Shown here: positions 18,501 to 48,400 of the stretch, one piece after another
How the letters are laid out: each line of letters opens with the position of its first letter
Numbering within the stretch: the stretch's first letter is position 1
Program-made: the position numbers and the translations under genes
DNA from: Diadema antillarum
Taxonomy: Eukaryota
Direction: 5' to 3'
Assembly (NCBI RefSeq): GCF_040938485.1
Contig: NW_027271551.1
Span: 620,001-684,000 of the forward strand
DNA length: 64,000 nt
The notes under the pieces: generated by a model
Database searches by the model: none
Told to the model about the DNA's origin: nothing
The model's input: only the letters and a program-made list of their open reading frames with translations

Positions 18501-21500
18501 CAGATGGGGACCCTGTCGACAGCTACAGACACGCATACGCGGCCAGCACGGCCACTGCACTGGCACCGTACCTTCCGACACTGCACACACATGCACATAG
18601 TCACAATGACATGAAAATGTATACATACAAACTCGATACAATCCTCACAAGCATTTGTACAGTACAATTCATCCGCTTAAAATATGAGAAACGGGGAAAA
18701 ATACGAACAATGCGCGAAATATGCATGGAATATCAGCGATTGTTTGCAAAAAATGTTGCCGCTATCGCGTTCACGACGTACCGAGTGCCCTGTACATCAC
18801 AGCCCAGGCCCGCGCGCCCATCCAACTACAGTCCGACTGCTTTGTGGGTCATTCCTTCTTGCCGAGCTCGCAGTGTGAAATGCATGCGTTATTACATACG
18901 CACCACAGAAGCTACAGCTGTACTCCAGCTAAGTAGAGGACGCAAGCCGTAAATAGAAATGAGACATCACGATTGGTAGGTGAGTTGTCGATTTTTTTTT
19001 TCGGCGGCCGAAAAAATAGTCAATATCAAACAAGTCGATGCGGCAACTGAAAATCGATGCGGGCGGGGAGCGGGCTGGGACGAGAATTATGAATTTCTTG
19101 GTATTTTCAGCGCCATTTTGAAAATAGTAAATAGTAAAAAAATTGATGCGGCGGCCAAAATCGATGCGCGCGAGGACAAGAAACTGGTTTCTTTTTTTAC
19201 TTGGCCTAAACTGTACACTGACATGAGAGCAGTTACTACAGCAGCCACTGGAATATGATTAATCAGTGATGGCAAGCATTATAACCCATTCCCTACAGGA
19301 ACCTGGTGGTCTGTGTATTAAGTCTACGGTGCTTTCAGAATTTAGTATGGAACGGGTTCATTATTCATGCATCCATTCGATAACTGCAAACATGTTAATA
19401 CTGTAAAACATGATATTTTCATGGCATGAAATTTTCCTGAATTGAAGCCAACAGCCTTTTTCGCAAGTTGCCTCTAACATTCAACGCATATAGTGTAGAC
19501 AAGACCTTTCACATGCCTTTTAATTTCGCGAATCCTAGCTCTCACAAAATTTGCAAAATTAAAATGCATGCTAACATTCCTTGTTTTACAGTAAATGATG
19601 CCGCAGGTCATTTTTCGTTACTGCGATTCACCTGTTGTGATCCATTTGACGCATTTCACAGGATCTGTATGATACTGTAGTGTCGCAACATTCTCTCCAT
19701 TCTTTCCCCACAGTCGAACGCCGTTGTCATAGCAACCCGTAAGGATTCTAGGGAGATAAACAGTGCACACTCACCATAATACAAATACTAAGCTTTTATC
19801 ATCTTCATCTTCTTTTTCTGGAGTTCTATTGAAAGCAAAATTCATACAAAATGGATGAGTCAATTCATTTTGGAAAACTTTGGTCACAAGTGCTGTACAG
19901 ATTTTCATATTACCATCATTATCTAATGCTGGTTTATTGTTATGATGTGTATGTACAATGCTCAGAAACAACTTTGATGGTAATGCATAAAGTTATCAAA
20001 TGTCCATCTGTAATTATCAAAAATATGGATAGACTACATAACAGAGTAACTGTTGTTATTTCAAACATTACAATATGATACACTTTTTTTTTACATGTGC
20101 ACCTGTATGTCGACCATAGATGTGTATACTAAAATGTATTGGCATGTGATATGCAATGTAACTCAGGACTAAATATGTGACCCGCTACAACAAAAGGATC
20201 CTAAAGTCGTTGACGGCTGAGCCGAGAAAATCGAGTTTGAAGTCACATCATCAAAATTGGTCAAAACAATTGGATTTCTGTTTTTGGTATAATTTTGTAA
20301 TCTAATGTTTTATCTATCATCTGCTGAAATTTCGAAGCTTAAAGGGTGTGTACAGTTCTGGTCGAGGTAAAGATTTAGCTTTTAACGTTTTGTGAGATAT
20401 TCAGAAACCACTCTATGAGATGTCAAAGAGCATGTAGTTCTAAGGGGTATCAAAAGTTTATTCGATGAAAATCGGTTTTGAAATGGCTGAGATATCCAAA
20501 AACAAGGTGAAACAAAGAGATATTAATAAAGTTGGGGCATGTCGCCTTTTATTATTAGCACTTTTTTGGATATCTCAGCCATTTGAAAACCAATTTTCAT
20601 CAAATAAACGTTGAATCCTCCTTAAAATTACATGCTCTTTCATATTTCATAAGAGGCTTGTCATTATCTCACTTAGGAATGTTCAAAACATGAATCCCTA
20701 CCTCAAGCAGTACTGTACAGTCCCTTTAATGATCAAAGGAAAGGCGAGAAATCAGCGTTTTTCTGGACTACGATTTTCTGACTTTCAACGTAACAGAAAC
20801 GTGTCCGAAGATTTGTATTTTTAGCGCCGCAGCTAGACTCCACCCCTAGCAACGAGGGAGTGAAGTGATCTTATTGGTCAGTGCGTGGCATCCTGATAAC
20901 TGATTGGTCATGCGTAGACCGCTGGCGCTAAGCTTGAATGAACATCGCGGAGGTCGCTAGGAGCATGCCTTCTATTGTCCAGCGGTGAAAACTGTCTCGC
21001 CTCCTTTTGATCATGACAGCGTCAGAAGGAAAACTTTAAAGGCGTTTTTCTCCAAACTCTAATTTCCTCAACCACTTGACATGCGCTAATAAAATCATCA
21101 ATATCTCCGCAACCGAGTATTTTTATAAGCTGTGCTATATATGAAATTAAAGTAGAAGAGTAAGGGAATAATGTCATGCCATTTTCAGAAAATTGTCCTC
21201 CCCCGACTTTCAGATCCTTTTGTTGTAGCGGGTCACATATATCTTTAACACTTTTGTATACTGATAGTGCAATCAAATCATCCGGCTGGTTGAATGGTCT
21301 CTCTGTTACATTGTTCAACCTTCCGAAGTGTCGTTATTGTATAAACAATTTGAAAACCCACAACAGGTGAAATTGACCACTGACCTTCAATTGTATTAAA
21401 TTAAGAATAGTGTGATTAAAACTTAATAGGTCTATATATCTGGACAGGGTTCAAATTCAGATGTACGCCAGAAACTCCAATGAATTCATTGCACGTTCTC

Positions 21501-24500
21501 CACACAGATGCTAATAACCAGTGAAATGCCAACATGCAGATCTCCTCCCCTCCCCCCCCCCCCCCCCATCCATTTAGGTTGGAATTTTGAATACGAATAC
21601 CAGGATACTTAACTACACGTACCTACGTGTATGTAATTTTCCCAGCTACCTACATAGGAAGGCATGACTGTAAGCTAAGTATGTAATCCCAACCTCAACC
21701 ATACATGCTGATGTGTACAATTTTTCTTTTTTCCCTGAGCTGTTACAACCTGGAACCTCTTGTAATGTTGGGTCACACATGCTCCAAGCAAAGAGGCATG
21801 TGTTTTTACTTGCACCATGCACGGTCACTTTAACCCATTGAGGACGAATCCCGAGTATACTGTATACGCTATATATTTCGCGGGGGTTTTATTTTCGCGA
21901 ATTTCGCGAGTTGGGAGCTATTCGCGAAATTAACAACACGCGAAAATATTACCTTCCAAAATGAATCCCTTGCCTTGATGATACGAACATTTCAGTACTA
22001 GAATACCATGTCACGGCTTACCGAACAGACCATACTGGCTAAGCTTGTTTACGCACGTCCACGTCTACTTACGAATACTGTAGAGAGCCAATCCATTATC
22101 GCAAGGGGACCACTCATCAGAAATCCAGCGCGATGGACTTAACCACTTCAAAAATGTTGAATTATAACTTACTAGTTCGCAGAGTTTGGCAAGTCTTTTT
22201 CATGCAGTGTATAACTAGTATCATTCTTATATGCTAGTACAAATGTAAGTTGAAAATTCACACTTTCTTTGCCACTTCATATTTTCTCTGGTCCCCCAAT
22301 TGCGAATTTAACCACTCGCGAAAATGTGTGACATCGGCAATTCGCGAAAATTTATGTACGCGAAAATTATAGCGTATACAGTACTCGGGCAGGGGTCTAT
22401 GGGAAATGCGTGTTGTAGCTAAATCAGTCCATCTTTAACGGGTTAATTGTACATTAGTGACATTTAAAATCATCCTGCTCACCATGTCACCTCTCACTGA
22501 CGCACAACACTTCTGTCATCCCGAGATAGTTCCAAGGAGCTGCTGAAAGGGGTTAATGCTTCAAAGTTCAAGGTTCAAGACATGGGCCTTGTGACGGATA
22601 AGAGGATGTACACTGCACAATTTATACTAACCTGTCATTCCATCCATGAATAGCACTAACCCAATCGTCATGAAGAATGCTCCCCACTGGTTCAGGGGCA
22701 GCCTGCTTCACAACATACTCCACCTCAACAACTGTTTCGGTAGAGATGCCGCTAGCCTCGAGGTGACTGGCCAGGGGCAGTCGAAGGAACTCTCCATCGA
22801 TGAGGAAGTCAAAATCCACATTCTGAATGTCTGCCTCTGCCTTATCTGTCCATCAGTGAGACAAAAAGGACAATGCAATGACCTAAAGTTTGTAGCATGT
22901 ACAGCTGTATCTGTTTACAGAGTGCTTCAGAATACTGTAAAATGAGGAATGTTTGTGTGCAATTCAATTTCGCGAGAGCCAAGATTCGTAAAATTAAAAT
23001 GAACATGAAAGTTCTTGCCTACACCATACACATAGAATGTTACAGGCAACTCGTGAAAATTTTATGCTGCAAAAAACAGCCATCGACTCCAAATCGCAAA
23101 AATTTCATGCCGCAAAAATATTGTGTTTTACAGTAAATCATAAAACATCATGGAGATCTACAATGTATGACACAATGGCATATGACAGAAGCAAATGATT
23201 TGAGCTTGAGAATATGCAATTTTATATCATCATCTTCAACAGATAATGAAATTGGTCCATACAATTGTAGGTACCTGTGTCGGTTCACTGTACATCACCT
23301 AATGCCCAAATTCGCATGTAAATACACACTCATACATTTTGGAGATGAAACCTAGGGATACTTATCTGGTAGTACTAGGATTAGACAGTTATACACATTC
23401 AAAAATGGAAAATATCGTTATATTGGGATATCTATCTGTTAGTACTAGGATTAGACAGTTAAACAAAAGTATCATTTAAATTGCATAAATCTATGGGGAA
23501 AAAAAGGAATAAAAAAAGTTTAAAACCCCAAATAACATTCAACATTCTATAGGAATATGAATTTTACCTTCATTTAGGAGCTTGTTGATGAGTGAACTGA
23601 GTTCTGGGACACCCACATTCGCCGGCACAGAAAATGGGGTATCAGAAACACGGTATCTGCAGCAGGATCAAGAATGTTACAGGCAAGGATAAGATACAGA
23701 ATCATTAGACACTGCAATAATGACCATGTTTAAACAATGAAGGACTGCTCTACATGTATCTGAGATGAAAGTTCTTTGCCATTATAATCTTATCGACTGA
23801 TCTGCACTTAAAATGCAATGCATATTTGTTATGACCTGTGTGGACTTGAAAATGTCAGTCTTCCATTGAAACTGAATTGCAATTTATATAAGAAACTAAA
23901 TTTAGAAATGTTGTTTATGTGTTGTAAGGGTGTGGAATTTTTTTTTCTGTCTTTCTTTGGTTCCCAGAGGTACAAATTAGGTTAAAGGTTCTACAGCAAG
24001 AAAATTTGTGTAAACTAAGACAAGGTGATATCCCACATCGTGAACTACCATGCACTGGGCAGCAGGCAAGCTTCTCTTGCTATTTGTGTTCCTAACAGTT
24101 GCTGAAAAGCAGTTGCTGCACAGGCTTTGACGATAAGCATGATAAGTACGTCCATACATTGTATGTTGTCCATGGAAATAGAAACATAGAATACTAATAG
24201 TAATAGGCGGTATTTTGTAGACTATAAGTGACAATTCAACATGTGATAAGGTCATTGCTGCTCACCTCACACAGCGATTTTGACACATCAAACACAGTGC
24301 GATATCATGTACCTTTGCTCCCTACTGCAGAACCAGAATTATCAAGCTACATTTACGATGTTGCATCACAGAAAATTGCCATGATCATGGCGCAAAATTT
24401 GAGGACGTCTGCTACGAGTATAAATTACAAATATTTTGTAGAACACGGTCTAGCTGGAATACAAAAAAAAAAAAATGCTGGAAATCTAACGAACGATAGT

Positions 24501-29277: not shown

Positions 29278-29305
29278 TACTACTATGCTACTACTAGTAG
29301 AAGTA

Positions 29306-29343
<38 letters not shown>

Positions 29344-29481
29344 ACGAGTAGTAGTAGTATAGCAGTAGTAGTAGTAGTAGTAGCGGTGGTAGTAGTAGTA
29401 GTAGGCCTAGTAGTAGTAGTAGTAGTAGTAGCAGTAGTAAAGTAATATACGTAATAGTACGTAGTATAGTAGTAGTAGTAG
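29278..29481. repeat. Compound (TAG/CTA)n microsatellite island
   Basis: ~200 bp of interrupted AGT/TAG triplets, preceded by CTA triplets. Confidence 0.95.
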
Positions 29482-30107
29482 AGTACACATAAGAGAAAGA
29501 GAAGTATATACATTGTAGTAGCACAAGTGCAAGTTTCGCCGTCGTCTTTTCACTCCATTTTGAACGCGGGGAAAAATTACAATAACCACTCAGTTGACTG
29601 CATACCGGTAATATAGCCAAGAATAAATCAGTTGAGAAGTTGTTGCTGGACAATCTTTCAATGTTAAAGTGCCACATCTATTTCACAGCTTAAACACAAT
29701 GACAACAACAGCAAACAAACAAAAAAACAATAATGTAAAGGTCAAAAAGGTGACAAGAATGATCAGACCTGTGTGGATGTATATCCGTATACGAATACGA
29801 GAATTATTGCAATGAAGTCATTGACTTTTGTGGTTTTTGAATTATACCTTGCACCTCCTGCCTCGTGAGGATATGATGTCACCGGCAGTGCTCAGGAAAT
29901 ACAGCGGTCCAAACTGTGTGCTGTATCAGTCAGCACTCGCGGGTAGACCATCTGCTGACTGGTACCAGGTACCAGATATTGTTGTTGTTTTTGTTTTTGT
30001 TCTTTTTATTTAGTGATATAACACGGTGATTAAAGAGTTGAAGAGTAGGATCCTATACAATGGAAAGGAAGAGAGAAAGAAAAAGGAACAGATATATAGA
30101 TGTATCG

Positions 30108-30157
30108 GAGAGAAGAGAGAGAGAGAGAGAGATGATGATGATGATGATGATGATGAT
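30108..30157. repeat. Adjacent (GA)n and (GAT)9 microsatellites
   Basis: gagagaagagagagagagagaga followed directly by nine GAT units (30131-30157). Confidence 0.95.
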
Positions 30158-31072
30158 ATAGGCAATCAGACATACTTTTGGCGGAAATAAAATAAAATGA
30201 AATGAAATTAATTAAGGTTTTTACTTTCCCTATCGCAGTCATTTTGTTCCCTGTTCAAATTCATTATTGATGAAGTGAATACCTGTCAAATATCAGTCAG
30301 CCCCCTTTAAAGATAAACAAACTAAACAAGAAATTGTAAGCAAACAAACAAACAAAACATAGAGATTCATCAGTCATTTATTGATATCATGATCTTATTC
30401 CACAGTTACCCCCTCCCACACACACACACACACACACATACACACAACTACACTCAAAGATGAAGGTAAAATTTTACATCTCGATCCTTCTTGACGTATG
30501 ATATTATATATAATGTCATAATGACATGGTTGAAAGCAAAGGAAGTGACAAAAACAAACATCTAAAACAAATTTAAAACATGACTGGTACTAACGAAAGA
30601 GAAAAAGAAAAACAAGCAGGCACAACAAAGATCTGAGAAATCGAAATGAAACATTCGTATACAAGTTGTAACAAGTATTGAAGAGAGCATCTCGTCATTC
30701 TCATTCCTTTATTATCTAACAAGTGTAAAATTGAAATTTGGCAACTTTTTTGTTCTTTTTCCTTCTTGATTTTAATTAGTCTAATGTTCTCCCTTTGTGT
30801 GCTCGACCTAACTTATTTTGATAAAGTCATGAAGTTGAATGCACTCCTTTATACTTTATTAGGCTTTAATTGCCCCCTTTCAATCCGTTGGTCATTATGG
30901 ATGCCCATTTGCGCCTTTTGTGTTGCTTCACTTTTGTTACGTCCTGTTCTTCACCCCGATTCCCTGAACAATGTGTCAGTCGCTGCCTCACACGGCCGGA
31001 AAGGCTGTGGAATAAAACCGGAAAAACAACTCATGAGCTGTAACAGCGGGTGATTTGGTACTGTCAGGCACC

Positions 31073-31106
31073 GATTGGGACGATTTTCAGCTCAAAATGT
31101 ATAAAA
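31073..31106 (+). promoter_or_regulatory. Putative Trf core promoter: inverted CCAAT (GATTGG ~31073-31078) and TATAAAA (31100-31106)
   Basis: The motifs lie ~110-140 bp upstream of the ATG at 31216. ETS-like CCGGAAA cores occur at ~30996 and ~31018. Function is inferred. Confidence 0.5.
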
Positions 31107-31215
31107 GTCGACCACATTGTCTGTACTCCTCAGATTTCTCGGGTTCGTGCTTCCACGAGAGAAAAACTTCCAAAGCAACGAACAGAAAACTTGTCAAGAG
31201 ACGGATTCCATCACA

Positions 31216-33127
31216 ATGGCCTGGAAATCAACTTTGTTCATCCTCTTTCTCGCTGCACTTACTGTCGCAGGTAAGAATAACCTCTTTCTTTCACATCGAG
31301 TCCTATTTTTTTTTTCATATGTGTACTCTTTTACCTATTCCAAGATTACAATAAAAAAGTTTAGATAAAAATTTCAATATGCACAGAGAATGAGAGAAGA
31401 AAAAAAATTACGCGAAACTGAAATTCAAATAATCAGAGATGGCGTATGTTTGATTTTCTGCTCGATAAATCAAACCAGCGCTTAAACACTGTCTAGCCAA
31501 AACAAAAAAAAAAAAAAAAAAAAACCCAGATATGAATAACATATATATAATATATGATATATATTATATATAAATACTTTTATATATATGAGATTAAAAT
31601 CTCATATATAATAATATCTATATATACTATCATATATATAATATATATATATATATATACACTTAAACTTTATTTCTGTGTTAATTATAACTTCGTATAA
31701 CAATTACACTGTGTTTATGATTCCTAGTCTCTCTCTCAGGCTGGAAAGTTATTATTTTTACTTTCTGAACGAGAACGATACTCACGTATAATCACGGGAA
31801 AAACGGTTAGAGTTGGTTTTCAGTTCTACATTACTTGTTGCTTGAAGATTACATTATTATCTCAACGTCTAGTTTCCTTACCAGGGACTTTGGATAGCGT
31901 TTAAATGCTATGGGGTTTTGTGTTCCAATACGCACTCAAGGCGCACAAAGGGTTGACATGAGGCTACCACAAAGGTGTGTCTTGATTTGCAAAGTTCGGC
32001 AGGTCTAATTGCTTCTATTCGTCTAATAACGTAACGTTTTGTCCACTTCTTTTGTTGCAATATCTGAACTGATACCCTTCATAGTACTGTACATTGACAA
32101 TGATACCACCAAGATTGGAAACACGCGGACTTTATAATATACGTCTGTCTTTGGTGCTTATTTTACAGTTTGCGCACAGAACGGTCGTCGGGGTCCAGAC
32201 GATATACGAAGGCGGGGTCGACCCTCTGATCGTCCTGGTAGTTGGGGAGGACCAGGTGGCCGCCAGACTGAGGCGAATCTAGAGCAACGCGGAGGCGGAC
32301 GACGAGATGGTGGTCGTAGGAATGAGGGACGTTCTCGACCAGGGGAGCAATTTTCAGACGGCCAAGAAAGACAAGGCGTAGAGGGAGGTGAAGGAGCTGA
32401 GTTCGGAGGACCAGGGGGCTTCAGACGAAGAGGCGGTAAACCGTTCTTTGGACAGGGAGGAAGACAAGAGGAAGGTCGACAAGGAGGACCGGATGGGGAT
32501 ATGTCACCGATGTCTTTTGGTGGTGGTAGGAGGTCTGATAGAGCCAATGAAACTGATGGAGACGAAAGCTTCCCTGGTCGTCATCACGGAAGGCATCACT
32601 CACGCCACCATCACCATCATCAACATCACCATGGAAGGCGTAATGAGAGTGAGGAATCTGAAGAAGGAGATAACAACGGTACCAGTATCTTCCCTTTCAG
32701 GTTCGGTCGCCATGGAAACCGCCGACATCACCATGTAAAGTGCAATGAGAGTGAGGAGTATGATGGCGAAGAAGACAACAATGACACTCGCATCTCTGAC
32801 TTCGAGGATGCACCATTTGGTAGACCATCTCGTCGTCGTCATCATCCCTGCAAACGTAATCGTACTGAGGAGGAAAATGAAATCTCAGATCGAGGGGATC
32901 GCCGTGATCAATCTGGACGGGATGGTGGGCGACGCGGCGAAGGTGGAAATGGTCATCCCTTCCAACGTCCGGGCAATGGTGGTCGTCCATTTGGCCGTCG
33001 AGGTGACAGAAAACCCGACAGCGATGACGAGGACATGTCGACCACTATCTCAACAAGGACTGAAGAAGTTGAAATAGAAGCAGTTGTTACCGACATCCCC
33101 GAAGTGAATGACGGATTTTTGGCATGA
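31216..33127 (+). CDS. Trf: Transformer (Trf, 185/333)-like secreted immune effector, 337 aa, two exons (31216-31270 leader; 32169-33127 mature protein)
   Basis: Exon 1 encodes MAWKSTLFILFLAALTVA followed by G|gtaag. After an 898-nt intron (ttttacag|), exon 2 is one open frame: VCA|QNGRRGPDD...GGKPFFGQGGRQ...RHHGRHHSRHHHHHQHHHGRRNESEE...RPFGRRGDRK...TEEVEIEAVVTDIPEVNDGFLA*. The two-exon leader + Gly-rich + PFFGQGG + His-rich + RGD + N-X-S/T + acidic C-terminus layout is diagnostic of sea urchin 185/333 proteins (from recalled SpTrf sequences). Confidence 0.85.
31541..31660. repeat. Degenerate (TA)n tract in the Trf-like intron
   Basis: Direct reading. Confidence 0.85.
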
Positions 33128-33527
33128 GCAGACTTTCTTCGTGTTTTCATGCCCAAGGACTTGGTGAACATTAGAATTTTGTTATCGACCCTGCTTAGCT
33201 CGTTTTACGTGGAATGGCACAGACTCGATTGCTCCAAGTTGTATGTCATATACATGTATTTGGAGCAGTAATCCCCTTTAAAATCTTTCCCCAAGCTGCC
33301 ACAGACTTCTGCAGTCACGTTTTCTTATTTCTCGACTGCACTCAGGACTTTTGATAATCTCCCGTTCAGCGTTATTACCCAATTTCTAGAAAATGATAAA
33401 AACCTATTTGATATAATTTTGTTCATATAAGTCGCCACATTTGAAAATGCAATTTGAAATGATCATGATTTGTCGTATTAACTGCCACTTTTGACAAGTG
33501 GGAACGGAATATGCATGTAAAAATAAT

Positions 33528-33533
33528 AATAAA
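33528..33533 (+). terminator. Candidate polyadenylation signal of the Trf-like gene
   Basis: AATAAA ~400 nt after the stop codon, followed by GT/T-rich sequence. Confidence 0.4.
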
Positions 33534-36877: not shown

Positions 36878-38126
36878 TCAGACCGGGGTACCCTCTCCTC
36901 TTGATGAGGTTTCAGTTCTGGCTTTGGTCTGATCCACATTTGTTACGTCTTCGAGAGAAATCTTGTCCACGGCGTGAAGGAGACCGTCCAGGTTGTCGTG
37001 ATACTGCTTGCCAGACATCCCCAGCTGGCTTGGCAGAGGGCTGCTGTAGGCGTGAGATGCTTCCACCTCCTCCAGAACCCTGGAGGACTTGAGGTCCTCT
37101 ACAGCCCCTCGCACCAAGACATTGAGAAGCCACTCAGAGTTACGCTTGCGCTCCGTTGTGAGGGGTGGGTAGGGGTTCCCGATGTACTCCAGGAAGGCCG
37201 TCTTCTGATTGTGATCTCCTTGGAAACCCGGAACTCGCAACAGCCTGGTGAAGTTCTGTGCTGTCCCTTCAAAGCGGGGACCTAGCACTTTAAAAAGCTT
37301 GTGAACTTGCTTCTTATCCTGTGATAAGAACAAAAAGAGACAACATTGACTACTTAATTTGCAGATGACACATGTAACAGGAACTCTTTGACAATTTGAA
37401 GTGTTGGTTGAAGGTATTTTATGACTATCAATAGACTTGACTTTGAACATCACGATTTTAATGCACTGCAAGTTAGACCACATGTTTGTCATTTTAGAAA
37501 TATCATAACATGTCAGCAAACTTTGTTAATTTTTCAGTCATTATCATGTTATCTGTATGCAGTCTCCAATAAAGTAATAACCATCATTAGTGATGTTTTC
37601 CCTTCACTCAATCATGAGCAAAAGGGCTTTTAATCCATCTAGAACAAGCTGGTTTAATGTAGCACATATTTTTCAATACCTGTTTGTGCATTCTCATGAC
37701 TAGTCTTCGACAGGTTAATAACGTCACTTTAAATTTCAAGAAGTATGCATACATTGTACATATTGAGCTGTTAAATCATTCACAGTCAACACATTGAAGA
37801 CAGAACATGCAAAAAAGTCCTTTGAAGAAATGCACAAAGAAAGTAATGCATTTACAAGTACTTGTTTCAAAGCCTTTTCCTTTGTGACATTTCAATTAAA
37901 TTTCAGTGATACAGATGAGAACAGTCTGCAGTACCAAGCCTATAAACAGAGTGCTGGTTTACACAAAAACAATAAATTCCCTAAGTACTTCTTTTTCTTA
38001 TTTTCCTTCTTCATTCCACTATCACATGCCTTGCAATGTTATGAAAATAATACAAAACATACAGTGTTGACAACTTTTGTCCATTCCGTACACTCAAGGA
38101 ACATACTCTGAAAAACACACACATAT

Positions 38127-38161
<35 letters not shown>

Positions 38162-39203
38162 AACTGTTCATATAAGAAAGCTACTTCCACATCTCTATGT
38201 CCCAGTAAATTCAAAATCCACATACACTTGTAATTTTTTGTAAGTAAAATACAGGATTACAAAGTAAACCCAATGCGACACACATCAAAGCTAAGCAGTC
38301 GTAGTGTGTAGAAAATTACGTAACTTATCATATGGGAATCTGGCGAAGAATACGTTTATGTACATATCATGTTACTTTTGTCACAGATATTTGTATCACA
38401 AGTGTGCCGTCTTTACCTTGAGCCAGAAGTCAGCTATTTTCATGGCTTCAGGATCCCGGTCTCCCCTTTTTGCCACAGTGATAAGCTGTTGAAGAGAGAA
38501 AGGAATGCCGCACTCGTTACTTGTGGAGTACAATGTAGCTGGCGATATGTTATGTGGGAGGGAAGTGTTATCCAAATAATTGTCTTTACAGTGACATACA
38601 CCATACTAGTTAATTAGTTTGGGGGGGGGGGGCAAGAGTTCCTTTTGTATCCCCCACTAATCTTTTGTCATATCTCTCTACACTATTAGCACTCCACCCT
38701 TATTGCCTAATGCACGGCTGCACGCTGTCCTTATGTCAGAGAGAAGCTAGGAGTGAGATTACATATACACGTCAGCAAGGGGGGGGGGGGAGGGTATGCA
38801 TCTTCCTTCCAAGATAAAGAGCTTTCAAATTTCAACTTGAAGCAATACACTTGGCAATCGGGTGCATGCCATACAGTATTATACAATATATAACATTTGT
38901 CTTATTCTGAAAAAAATATATACATATGAAGAGTTTGTTTGCAAAAACCGATAAGTCCATATTTGCCAGAGATATTTGCGATTGAAGGTCAAGAAAAATA
39001 AAGAGAATAATAAGAAATTTTTCGCTTCTTTTGACCATAACTTCAACAATACATGTACCATTATATGTAGTGACCAATATATAATTTAAAAGGTATTATT
39101 TTGTACTTTATATCAGAGACCGTACTTCAAAATCTTCAAAAATGGACTTATCGGTTTTTGCCAATAAACTCTTCATAGTATCTATAATATATATACATTA
39201 TAC

Positions 39204-39237
<34 letters not shown>

Positions 39238-40424
39238 ATCATGTAAAGAGGTCTGTACAGTTGTATATAGATCATAAATATTTGCCAAATAGTAACTCAT
39301 CTGGCAATTGGTAATCCACTTTGTTTGTTCGTGTTTTTGCTTTTTTTATGTGTGTGTTTGCATCTTTGTGAGGTGTAAAAAAAAAAATGAAAAAAAAGTT
39401 TTTAGGTGTTAGAAACCAAACCAAGGCTCACCTTCTAGTGCATGAGACAATGATATTAACATGATAAAGTAGGATCTCTAGCTACATATCTACAGTGAGT
39501 GCACTCCCATCATATGAACGAAAATGGTTATAACAAAATTCCAGTTACTAATACAACGTGGTATATATTCAGGCCACAACATTTTCCGTTATATGTTTTC
39601 CATTTGTTTATCAGTGTTTATTTGTTTGTTATGAACTAAATAGTCATTTCGATACTTTGAATGATTAATCAATGAAAGAAAAATACCAGTCCCACGGACT
39701 TGGTTATAATGGGAGTCCACTGTATGACAAATTCCAGTACCATACTTACTATGGTCCACAGAGATAAGATACAGTATTAAGCTACGTTCTACATCTCATC
39801 ACCATGTTCATCGGATAGCATAGAGTTACCACATAACAGTTAGAATGAATGCAGCAGTATTAAATAAATCTAAATACAGATATAAGCGCGGTAAGCGGCT
39901 GTCTGTGACATTGTCATTGGGTCAAAACGATATAGGTCTACTTAACACGATTTATCTTGGTCATTTTATTCAGGAAATGAACTGGCATCTAAAGCGTCTT
40001 ATCCTTGACAGAAGACGTGCTATGACTGTTCATGTTCCACTAGATTCTGTATAGAAAATAGCTGTAGTTGGTCTATGGACTAAGTAGCCCGACCAGACGC
40101 TGTTACTACGCTATGCGAAAACAGCGACGTACCATGTACAGCGACTGGGCTGTGACCTAGTTATGGACTAAGGTACATTGCAGTTTACAGAATAACTAAC
40201 ACGATTTAGAGTACGTGGGCCCATGCGACAGTCGACGTCAATGGAAGTGTATCGGTACTTACCCTTTCAGCATATTTCTGTGTCTCGTACGCTTTCATGT
40301 AACCCAGTTCGATACGTTCATACTTCACAAGTGCAGTAATATATGCTTGAAGTAAATTCACACGGTTTTCCGGGCTACCACCGAAGCGCAAGTAGGGCTT
40401 TATCTTAAATTTTATCCGTCTCAT
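36878..40424 (-). CDS. MRPL17: Mitochondrial ribosomal protein L17 (bL17m), 223 aa, 3 exons
   Basis: Exons 40263-40424 (MRRIKF...RVNLLQAYITALVKYERIE...YAER), 38417-38485 (LITVAKRGD...AMKIADFWLK) and 36878-37318 (DKKQVHKLFKVLGPRF...FTRLLRVP...AFLEYIGNPYPPL). Introns are GT-AG, phase 0. Motifs match the L17 family. Confidence 0.94.
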
Positions 40425-45400: not shown

Positions 45401-48400
45401 ATTCGTAGGACGAACTGAACGTGAAGATGGAGGAGTACGTCTTCGAGGCGGTGCTCCGCTGGGTTCGTCACCGCGAGGCGCAGCGGCGGCACCTCGTCGC
45501 GCGCCTCCTGCTCAACATCCGCCTCGGCATGATCAATACGGATTACTTCATGAATAGCATCAAAGCCCATCCCCTCGTGCGAGACGTGGAGGATTGCCGA
45601 CCGGCCATACTGCAGACCATTCACTACACCTACAACTTCGACCCCAATGAGACTCTAAAGGGACCAAGTGCGGTCATCTCGAGACCGCGGTATGTGTAAA
45701 TTTGCTATTTGACGATGCCAACTTTATTCAAATAACNNNNNNNNNNNNNNNNNNNNNNNNNNNNNNNNNNNNNNNNNNNNNNNNNNNNNNNNNNNNNNNN
45801 NNNNNNNNNNNNNNNNNNNNNNNNNNNNNNNNNNNNNNNNNNNNNNNNNNNNNNNNNNNNNNNNNNNNNNNNNNNNNNNNNNNNNNNNNNNNNNNNNNNN
45901 NNNNNNNTTTTAACCAGGGTATAGCCCCATCTGTTGTTTCTACACAGTTATTCTTGGGAGCCCTGCAGCAATAAAAAAAAAGAAGTAACAATTGATTCAA
46001 ATAACAAAGTAACGAATCTAGGACATCCTGTTGTACATAGCAATATCAAAACCATCGAAATGCTATGTGTAAATAGTGCATGATAATGATACACATATTC
46101 CCCACATTATTTGTAATAGGATTTATATCTTTACACAATATAGGAATATCGAGTTGCACGTGGAAATTACTCCTGAAAGAACTATAAACAGGGGAAAATG
46201 AGGAATTTGAAAAGACAGTTGTAAAGGAGGGGAGGAGGAGGAATAGAGTCTTTTATGTTGTGAATGGATGTGATGAGAAGGGGAAGAGTTGCCGTGTAGA
46301 CGGTCTTAATGAGAACTCTTGGTATAGGATGAAATCCTGAAAGGACTGTGGAGAGGCCCTGACGAGGACCGTAGATTATTGCTTTGTTGATCACTCTCAT
46401 ACAGGTGTAAAACGTCCTTTCTTTTATCGACTAAAACATCTCAACCACTCACTCTTAATCAATTAGATTACTTAACAGATGAAGAAATAGTTATTCATTC
46501 ATGGATACGATTATGATGTGAAAGTGCAACAATCTCAAAATGTGAAAGTGCATCAACATCAAAGCTATGAGGATCATGACTACCAATGACGTCATGTTTG
46601 GCCAAAAGAAACTTAACAGATCTCAAAACTGTTATGTACTCGTAAATACTTAGGTATACGAAAGAAGAGATTAGTTGGACCACTTAATGACACAATGTGC
46701 ACGCGAAAAGGTGCCTTTCCGAAGCTGCCTTTATTTCGCAATGCGCATGCGCATCATACATTGAAGACACGTGCCAATGCATGGCACGTGATGGGGGGGG
46801 GGGGCATTTCATGAAGCGTTTTGTCAAATATTTTTTACCTGACAAACTGTTATATTAAGCTACTGAAATCCTTACATCTGGTTGGCTGAGAGCAAATTTG
46901 TTTGACAAGTTTGTCGGACAAAACGCTTCATGAAATGCCCCCTGGTTCTTCATACATAACAAAAACCACTATTAAGCAGCAAGGGACACACGGAAAGTAT
47001 TCGTAAAGCCTTTGTGACTTTTCTTGATATTAGGTTGCCTTTCAAGCTCTTGTTCGCGGTAGGCGGATGGAGTGGCGGCAGTCCAACGAGTGCCATCGAG
47101 TGTTACGACACTAGGGCCGATAGGTGGGTGCTGCTAGACACACAGAACAATCGGCCGCGCGCCTACATGGGCATCGCCGTCCTCAACATGAAACTCTACG
47201 CGGTCGGCGGTTTCGACAGCAACCAGTATTTTAACAGCGTAAGGTGCTTCGACCCTATTTCCAAGGTAACGAACGATTTCTACCACAGTGTTGAGATTAA
47301 CCAGATCAAATGTTTTTTTTTTCCTTACTTCAGTTTGGCACGCGTGCCGTTATGTTGTAGGCCCTATATGTCTCTATCACGACACACCCAGAAGTAACTT
47401 TGCTGTAATAATGAAGTGGCAGTATCTCAATTAAGTGCTGACGTGATGTTCGACATGACGCAGTGATGACATAATGTTCGACATGACGCACTGATGACGT
47501 AATGTTTAGCATGATTAACATATTATTAAAAGTTTTGAATGCACGCACACTAAAAGTTTGGACGTAATAATCATGCATTCAGAAGATACCTAACTCACTA
47601 AAATTTCACGTTGCAAGAGAGACCTGCTTGATTATTATTTTGTTTTTTGATTGCGATTAGTATCGACCTTACTCCGATGAAAGTGTAGGACGCCACCAGA
47701 ATAGTGGTGTCGTGGTGACTTTTCCGTATTACACTTGCTCCTTCCTTCCTCCATTTCTTTCTTTGTTTTTTTTTTCTATTTGCCTTTTTCTTTTTCTCTG
47801 TTTTTATTACGAAGGTATGGACAGAGGTGGCACCCATGAACTCCAGGCGATGCTACGTCAGTGTTGGCCGCGGTAGGGGATCGCATCTACGCCTTGGGTG
47901 GCTTCGATGGACACACCAGACTCAAGACCGTCGAAAAGTATTTCGTCTATTATCCTTTCTGGATGAATACTCACTTCTCTCCCCACAGCCCATTCCAAGT
48001 TTGTCATTGCTGTCTGTTTGCAGAACCCGGTTGAGGATATTGATTCGGGGACAGGGCGTGGCCGGAAATTTATCATATTCAATGTTTCCTTCTATACTTT
48101 GAAAGAAAAAAAAAAAACCATATTATATTCGATGCCATGTGACCAAAGTAAAATAACATACTGCTATACAGTGTCACGTGTTGTATATTGACAATTGTTG
48201 CTTGATGAGAAATAACGTATGGTCTATAGAAAAAGATTTCCCAAATTGTTACATCATGCTATGATTATCATTTTTAAAATAGATTTATACCAATACATTT
48301 AAGTGGTATTATCATCCCTATAAAGGCAAGCGTGTGGACAATATTATGTCTGAATATAAATTATCAGGACACTGAAATGACGCTCAATATTACCTTTATA

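Follow-up and report, generated by a model that had tools for sequence, protein, structure and literature searches.

In the current work, a gene located at positions 31216-33127 on the plus strand of a 64,000-nucleotide (nt) stretch of the Diadema antillarum genome (JBFRCO010000663.1:620001-684000, the whole of which is referred to as the window) was analysed with respect to its structure, its surroundings and its relationship to the Transformer (Trf, or 185/333) family of sea urchin immune genes, to which its low-complexity product is linked by the comparisons described below. The coding sequence starts with the ATG at 31216, is interrupted by a single intron and yields upon splicing 1014 nt specifying 337 amino acids (aa). 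The features of the gene and of its immediate flanks are as follows:

30870-31215, plus strand: 5' flank and 5' untranslated region, approximately 81-83% identical to Diadema paralogues (blastn against D. setosum locus L001 and D. antillarum locus L003)
31100-31106, plus strand: TATAAAA box, recognised by pattern within the 5' flank
31216-31270, plus strand: exon 1, with 18 full codons and one further nt (55 nt in total, phase 1), which specifies the hydrophobic leader MAWKSTLFILFLAALTVA; donor with exon end GCAG and intron start GTAAG
31271-32168, plus strand: intron of 898 nt, GT-AG, with acceptor TTTTACAG ending at 32168
31499-31524, plus strand: poly-A tract inside the intron (repeat scan)
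31541-31659, plus strand: AT-rich microsatellite inside the intron (repeat scan)
32169-33127, plus strand: exon 2, 959 nt, encoding the end of the signal peptide (cleavage between VCA and Q), the entire mature protein and the stop codon (33125-33127)
33528-33533, plus strand: candidate polyadenylation signal, being the first AATAAA 3' of the stop codon (pattern only)

The spliced product is 100% identical to an NCBI RefSeq D. antillarum protein annotated as 'uncharacterized protein' (P0001), and the two-exon model of the original prediction (a 55-nt leader exon and one large exon, together specifying 337 aa) proved exact to the base. An alternative acceptor AG at 32179 was rejected, as its use breaks the frame. 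The mechanically generated list of open reading frames (ORFs) contains only an ATG-started piece of 208 aa at 32501-33127, and had thus been correctly described as missing both the leader and the N-terminal half of the protein.

Cleavage of the signal peptide is predicted to occur after VCA, leaving an N-terminal Gln on a mature protein of 316 aa with an isoelectric point (pI) of 6.5 and a composition of 19% Gly, 16.5% Arg, 10.8% Glu, 8.5% Asp and 6% His. The following regions and motifs were recognised along its length:

32177-32533, plus strand: Gly/Arg-rich N-terminal region, residues 22-140 (30% G, 19% R, pI 11.4), aligning with the Trf glycine-rich region (hhalign)
32441-32464, plus strand: PFFGQGGR, identical over all 8 residues to the end of the SpTrf (S. 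purpuratus Trf) glycine-rich region
32534-32863, plus strand: His-rich region, residues 141-250 (16% His), with the run HHHHHQHHH and five of the six N-X-S/T sites, colinear with the Trf histidine-rich region
32624-32851, plus strand: two imperfect tandem repeats of approximately 35-39 aa (R1, residues 171-207; R2, residues 208-246) of the form NESEE..DNN[GD]T..FGR..RRHH
32891-32899, plus strand: RGD motif 1, residues 260-262, private to the window copy, with RWD in all paralogues
32999-33007, plus strand: RGD motif 2, residues 296-298, private to the window copy, with RGG in paralogues
33014-33124, plus strand: C-terminal tail of residues 301-337, acidic and rich in Thr (pI 4.1), in colinear alignment with the C-terminal region of Trf (TTES..EVVEI..)

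The PFF element is invariant across the Diadema family and the camarodont Trf proteins. Self-alignment of R1 with R2 gave a score of 73 compared to 24.5 +/- 4.5 for shuffles (z 10.8; reached by 0/1000 shuffles), while the second Gly/Arg block, containing both RGD motifs, occupies residues 251-300. The motif KPFFGQGG (32438-32461) and both RGD motifs lie where the original prediction had placed them, and its count of six N-X-S/T sites (residues 145, 177, 188, 211, 223 and 249) is likewise confirmed; the RGD motifs, however, are not conserved in any paralogue, and neither of them occupies the position of the SpTrf RGD directly after PFFGQGGR, where the window copy has QEEG. A Pfam scan of exon 2 matched no family. 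The mature protein is predicted to be intrinsically disordered, the AlphaFold2 model obtained with the family alignment having a mean predicted local distance difference test (pLDDT) score of 41.7 and a predicted template modelling (pTM) score of 0.14, with a leader helix (residues 2-24) as its sole confident part and sole secondary structure, and with all but one of residues 26-337 at a pLDDT below 50.

A first, word-based homologue search returned Diadema proteins only. A profile of nine Diadema family sequences (A2) was searched at E <= 10 in 5.8 billion proteins, the full family profile being used because the PFFGQGG segment alone, with approximately 16 bits in a local phmmer test, scores too low to be listed. 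Among 8000 candidates scored, the sole match outside Diadema was Sp185/333 B9 epsilon of S. purpuratus (P0008). In the direct BLASTP comparison, residues 1-331 of P0001 were aligned to residues 1-319 of P0008 with 29% identity (E 5e-7, composition-adjusted). Biomineral or spicule-matrix proteins, a better match to which had been named in advance as an outcome that would speak against Trf, did not appear in any search, and this identity was therefore rejected.

Since both families are of low complexity, which inflates alignment statistics, the case for Trf rests on shuffle controls rather than on nominal E-values. A second alignment (A3) was composed of Trf sequences from S. purpuratus, S. intermedius, Heliocidaris erythrogramma and Lytechinus pictus, gathered with P0008. 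Full-length alignment of A2 with A3 by hhalign gave a probability of 99.1%, an E-value of 5e-19 and a score of 134 over 283 columns, compared to 26 for the reversed control, 14 +/- 2 for global column shuffles, and, for column shuffles that were local, 23 +/- 6 (maximum 39) in 40-column windows and 45 +/- 9 (maximum 70) in 20-column windows. Upon removal of the signal peptides the score was 80.7, as against 24 +/- 4 (40-column) and 28 +/- 5 (20-column windows). Smith-Waterman tests of three Diadema proteins with five Trf proteins produced z values of 10-17 relative to global shuffles, mostly 4-9 (range 2.7-8.7) relative to shuffles in 30-aa windows, and 2-7 relative to those in 15-aa windows.

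The joint alignment consists of about a dozen colinear blocks extending from end to end. The leader block, M..K.TL....AAL.(I/V).A.AQ, is approximately 50% identical to the SpTrf leader without gaps, the segment AALAISA.AQ of D. setosum P0003 being the same as in SpTrf. It is followed in the N-terminal half by GG(R)PGG, GG(K/R)PFFGQGG(R), N(E/D)..EDG and the His run, in the middle part by GRRN(E/H)(S/T)E, RHH.K, (A/N)PFGR(P/K), RN.TEE, RDG and GNRG(G/R)(R/W), and in the tail by TTE..T...E(V)(V)EI. The claim that the leader and most elements differ from SpTrf is contradicted by this ungapped leader match and this colinearity. The motif PFFGQGGR can also be seen in an SpTrf alignment given in the PMC11089230 supplement; sequences from this supplement were used by eye and through one segment of 43 aa, while full-length comparisons were made with database proteins.

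The Trf gene of L. pictus (P0016; locus L007, CM073226.1) was taken as the reference for gene structure, because the published figures for SpTrf exon 1 (51 or 54 nt, yet 18 or 19 aa; PMC8634487) are mutually inconsistent. Its exon 1 measures 55 nt and ends in phase 1, with donor exon end CAG and intron start GTAAG, acceptor TTTTACAG and an intron of 852 nt; exon-1 length, phase, donor and acceptor thus agree with those of the window gene, and without gaps the two exons 1 are identical at 37/55 nt (67%). NCBI names the L. pictus protein (P0016, L007:10001-11770) 'serine/threonine-protein phosphatase 1 regulatory subunit 10-like' (PPP1R10-like). This name is wrong: P0016 is 43% identical to Sp185/333 B9 across 97% of the length of B9 and is encoded by a gene of Trf structure.

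These data bear on the explanation by convergence, according to which the window gene would specify a secreted low-complexity protein peculiar to Diadema whose likeness to Trf is confined to composition (Gly/Arg/His/acidic) and block order, with no shared ancestry. It can draw on the lack of a Pfam match for exon 2, on database-scale searches for Trf that fall short of significance, and on the observation that the real Smith-Waterman score is already matched to about two thirds by shuffles of local composition, so that a considerable share of the raw score is compositional. The real scores nevertheless exceed these same shuffles with z of approximately 4-10, and composition does not explain an exact 8-mer (PFFGQGGR) at the same place, a leader with approximately 50% identity, the blocks RN.TEE and GNRG(G/R)W in the same order, or a leader exon with the length and intron phase of the L. 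pictus Trf gene. Convergence is for these reasons largely refuted and is considered highly improbable. As judged from protein alignments and gene structure, the window gene and the camarodont Trf genes are shown to share a common ancestor, and the reading of the gene as a Trf homologue with the two-exon design of the family was borne out by BLASTP, hhalign, the shuffles and the structure of the L. pictus gene.

Further Trf copies in Diadema were located by tblastn on individual loci, and the copy numbers given are therefore minima:

D. antillarum, JBFRCO010000249.1 (L003): three tandem type-A copies within approximately 15 kb
D. antillarum, JBFRCO010000249.1, approximately 38 kb from the type-A cluster (L004:10001-11996): type B (P0005, 376 aa)
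D. setosum, OZ188187.1 at approximately 4.67 Mb, over 14 kb (L001): three type-A copies
D. setosum, OZ188187.1, approximately 37 kb from the cluster (L008:10001-12469): type B (P0007, 453 aa)
D. setosum, OZ188187.1 at approximately 4.55 Mb (L002:9414-11050): rearranged copy (P0004)

The spacing between type B and the type-A cluster (approximately 37-38 kb) is the same in each species, from which it follows that this layout is conserved across both. Exon-2 reading frames are intact in all Diadema copies. The few members sampled differ by small indels of 3, 7-8 and 2 aa. In type B the poly-His run is longer, and a 74-aa repeat is present in two copies in D. antillarum and in three in D. setosum. 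The window gene had been described as solitary, which holds within the window, where tblastn with P0001 and the divergent P0005 did not find a second Trf copy, but not for the genome, where a cluster of at least three paralogues plus type B is present on JBFRCO010000249.1. The related proposal of an orphan or ancestral-type locus is not tenable given this tandem cluster and type B in D. antillarum and the same layout in D. setosum.

The D. setosum model P0004 is chimeric, with an inverted fragment that corresponds to the 3' flank and the end of exon 2 of the window gene (window positions 33751-33058, 73% identity) abutting a 5'-truncated exon 2. Its annotated N-terminus is an antisense translation of a Trf tail and it has no leader exon; this copy is probably rearranged and dead, which would fit instability at Trf loci. 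It was rejected as orthologue of the window gene, being no closer than other copies (dS, the synonymous divergence, of 0.38) and having unlike flanks except for the inverted 3'-flank fragment.

The unit that the window gene shares with the cluster copies extends from approximately 29654 to 33134, ending 7 nt past the stop codon, with one homology block ending at 30132. It includes a short tandem repeat with counterparts at other Diadema copies:

30108-30157, unstranded: (GA)13 then (GAT)9, approximately 1.06 kb upstream of the ATG, detected with Tandem Repeats Finder (TRF) and part of the duplicated unit

Several cluster copies (L003, L001) have GA repeats 0.8-1.1 kb upstream, two D. setosum copies have TC repeats approximately 1.1-1.3 kb downstream, and only a single other such repeat is present in the 64-kb window. 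SpTrf genes are framed by GA and GAT repeats (PMC5491942), which the upstream GA/GAT repeats of the Diadema copies recall. A (TAG)n microsatellite of approximately 65 units (29295-29485) is situated just 5' of the boundary of the shared unit (~29654).

In the maximum-likelihood tree three clades were obtained, corresponding to camarodont Trf, Diadema type B and Diadema type A, with the split between Diadema and camarodonts supported at 100/100, and the window gene forms a lineage inside type A whose position the tree leaves unresolved. Compared with each of the other type-A copies of either species, the window gene has a dS of 0.33-0.38. As this exceeds the between-species dS of the cluster copies (0.15-0.28), the window gene probably left the cluster before D. 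antillarum and D. setosum split, an age that gene conversion within the cluster could exaggerate. The ratio of non-synonymous to synonymous divergence (dN/dS, gene-wide) is 0.25-0.33 for the window gene versus all paralogues and 0.21-0.59 overall, and the former range therefore points to purifying selection on the window gene and not to decay. A pseudogene was rejected on the grounds of the intact ORF and a dN/dS of approximately 0.3.

The window gene is flanked by WDR12 and MRPL17, both of which had been named in the original prediction and are confirmed by domain or human-homologue matches. The upstream neighbour WDR12 (minus strand; 447 aa, with Pfam matches to NLE and WD40) contains an exon for the NLE domain (22622-22819) that matches human WDR12 at E 6.7e-18, while the downstream neighbour MRPL17 (minus strand, approximately 36878-40424) encodes a 223-aa Ribosomal_L17 protein and is followed by a BTB-Kelch gene. 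The same three neighbours, together with an identical Trf protein, are present on contig JBFRCO010000268.1 (L005), which is evidently the other haplotype of the window region. The two haplotigs (window 21216-43127 compared with JBFRCO010000268.1) show approximately 97.6% identity, interrupted by numerous indels and in places by rearranged blocks; around the gene they display 91 mismatches and 60 gaps over 8.6 kb (approximately 1.1% plus indels), whereas the coding sequence differs at 0/1014 nt, compared to approximately 11-12 differences expected by our own calculation. High allelic diversity, which is a Trf trait, was accordingly not seen at the window copy among the two haplotypes compared from one individual.

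An interspersed repeat of approximately 400 nt (84-91% identity), probably a transposable-element fragment, was found at 20339-20729 and 56447-56804 of the window and at L004:20587-20983 near the type-B gene. Runs of N occupy positions 45737-45907 and 56286-56424 of the window.

The gene could also be a Trf homologue that, after leaving the cluster, ceased to serve as an immune effector and either acquired a new extracellular role (for example RGD adhesion or metal binding) or is expressed at a low level and in the process of being lost. Such a fate would agree with its location alone between housekeeping genes, with a 3' flank unlike that of the cluster copies (homology stopping 7 nt past the stop codon), with the two private RGD motifs, with the lack of allelic coding diversity, in which it is unlike the hypervariable SpTrf, and with the D. 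setosum inverted fragment of window-type 3' flank sitting at the rearranged leaderless copy. Against this, the ORF, the splice sites and the TATA box are all intact, the dN/dS of approximately 0.3 and the zero coding differences between haplotigs argue for a kept function, and the cluster copies resemble the window gene in their 5' flank (81-83% identity), which suggests that regulation may be common to the window gene and the cluster. This alternative is regarded as unlikely.

The window gene is, in our assessment, very probably an intact dispersed paralogue of the Diadema Trf family, duplicated out of the main locus, whose product would act as a secreted disordered immune binder. Its site between WDR12 and MRPL17 would be explained by an old duplication of a unit of approximately 3.5 kb (~29654-33134) from the main Trf locus, and would not be ancestral. 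Several observations weigh against this interpretation. An exhaustive HMMER profile search of 1.84 billion representatives retrieved only Diadema proteins, and no Trf, at E <= 1e-3; the Sp185/333 B9 match of the A2 search had a score of only 25 bits (E 2.8 over 5.8 billion sequences); and the reciprocal search from Sp185/333 gave no Diadema proteins at E <= 1e-3. To this are to be added the inflation of alignment statistics mentioned above, a tblastx comparison of the L. pictus Trf locus (+/-10 kb) with the window and all Diadema loci in which no shared neighbours were detected, and a similarity between the 5' flanks of the window gene and of L. pictus Trf that is not above shuffles. The window copy is moreover without a downstream GA repeat, the proteins of both haplotig copies are identical, unlike SpTrf alleles, and an immune role would be carried over from what has been published on other Trf proteins.

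According to the proposed mechanism, a cleavable signal peptide would be removed from a protein with no predicted fold, in which a basic Gly/Arg region ending in GGKPFFGQGGR is followed by a His-rich, N-glycosylatable region of imperfect repeats, then by another Gly/Arg block and finally by a tail that is acidic and rich in Thr. By analogy with published SpTrf, HeTrf (H. erythrogramma) and PlTrf (Paracentrotus lividus), phagocytic coelomocytes would make and secrete this protein or show it on the cell surface. As a disordered multivalent binder it may attach to microbes and to molecules including lipopolysaccharide, beta-glucan and flagellin through its Gly-rich and His-rich parts, gain structure on binding, and promote opsonisation and phagocytosis, while the poly-His run may confer affinity for metal (Ni). 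The published Trf properties used here are those reported in PMC5491942 and PMC8268236.

A further and more speculative proposal, which we consider doubtful, is that Diadema retains two old Trf lineages (A and B) plus a long-separated single copy that, in contrast to the unstable cluster genes, is tightly constrained and has acquired its own two RGDs, the latter copy being a specialised non-diversifying Trf such as a cell-adhesive or integrin-binding opsonin. If so, a comparison of this copy with the cluster and with camarodont Trf would allow the Trf of the euechinoid ancestor to be reconstructed, with a 55-nt phase-1 leader exon, a PFFGQGG core, RN.TEE and GNRG blocks, and an upstream GA repeat.

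Trf has been known from six species, all belonging to Camarodonta (PMC8634487, 2021), and is reported to be lacking in the cidaroid Eucidaris tribuloides as well as in one sea star and one sea cucumber (PMC8268236). Diadema belongs to the order Diadematoida, inside Euechinoidea and outside Camarodonta. No paper describing Trf or 185/333 in Diadema was found in full-text literature searches, the Diadema Trf genes are annotated by NCBI as 'uncharacterized protein', and the 2026 D. antillarum genome paper lists Trf as future work only (PMC13511894). Diadema Trf is thus a new lineage-specific subfamily of a known family and extends Trf to Diadematoida, and the expectation that the gene would inform on the origin of the family stands, Trf being reported from Camarodonta only in the papers searched (PMC8634487, PMC8268236). 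The family, together with its leader-exon design and its clustering, would accordingly have arisen no later than in the last ancestor that Diadema shares with the camarodonts. On our reading of echinoid phylogeny, this ancestor represents the base of crown euechinoids. The leader, PFFGQGG, RN.TEE, GNRG-W/PFG and the acidic tail provide anchors for finding Trf in other urchin orders. D. antillarum has been hit by basin-wide disease die-offs. The Diadema Trf loci are direct candidates for the immune-family work named in PMC13511894.

Among known systems, the L. pictus Trf gene has the leader-exon organisation of the window gene and an intron of similar size, 852 nt compared to 898 nt. Like the window gene, it has no second called gene of similar size within +/-10 kb, and LvTrf of L. 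variegatus is likewise a single described gene. The L. pictus protein is the most divergent camarodont protein in the tree.

With HeTrf (He185/333; P0015, P0017) and PlTrf, the window protein has in common a size within 257-349 aa, an Arg content of approximately 11-12% or more, poly-His stretches, N-glycosylation sites (up to ten) and no conserved RGD. Since RGD is lacking in PlTrf as well as in HeTrf (PMC8268236), this motif does not define the Trf family. Smith-Waterman comparison of P0001 with two HeTrf proteins gave z of 14-17 relative to global shuffles. The element sequences of HeTrf and PlTrf are unlike those of Diadema, types A and B of which form their own clades, split at 100/100 from camarodont Trf.

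SpTrf genes (e.g. Sp185/333 B9 epsilon, B0ZT35, P0008; D1 alpha, P0010) resemble the window gene in having two exons, the first being a short leader exon, and the proteins share the same order of regions, namely a glycine-rich region, a histidine-rich region with N-glycosylation sites and imperfect repeats, and an acidic Thr-rich C-terminus. The mature window protein starts with Gln, as do most SpTrf, and is predicted to be disordered, as is known for the mature SpTrf protein from experiments on rSpTrf-E1 (PMC5491942). The differences are that the window protein is only approximately 29% identical to SpTrf, that its RGD motifs follow the His-rich region whereas the RGD typical of SpTrf directly follows PFFGQGGR, between the Gly-rich and the His-rich regions, and that the type-1 repeats of SpTrf (GGPMGGRRFDGP) are not recognisable in its Gly-rich region, while Diadema type B keeps a similar GGPGGERRFDPSRF. 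The window copy is also unlike SpTrf in lying outside any cluster, in having identical proteins on the two haplotigs and in its intron of 898 nt. At the level of the family, both SpTrf and Diadema Trf are multigene families arranged in tight clusters with GA repeats nearby.

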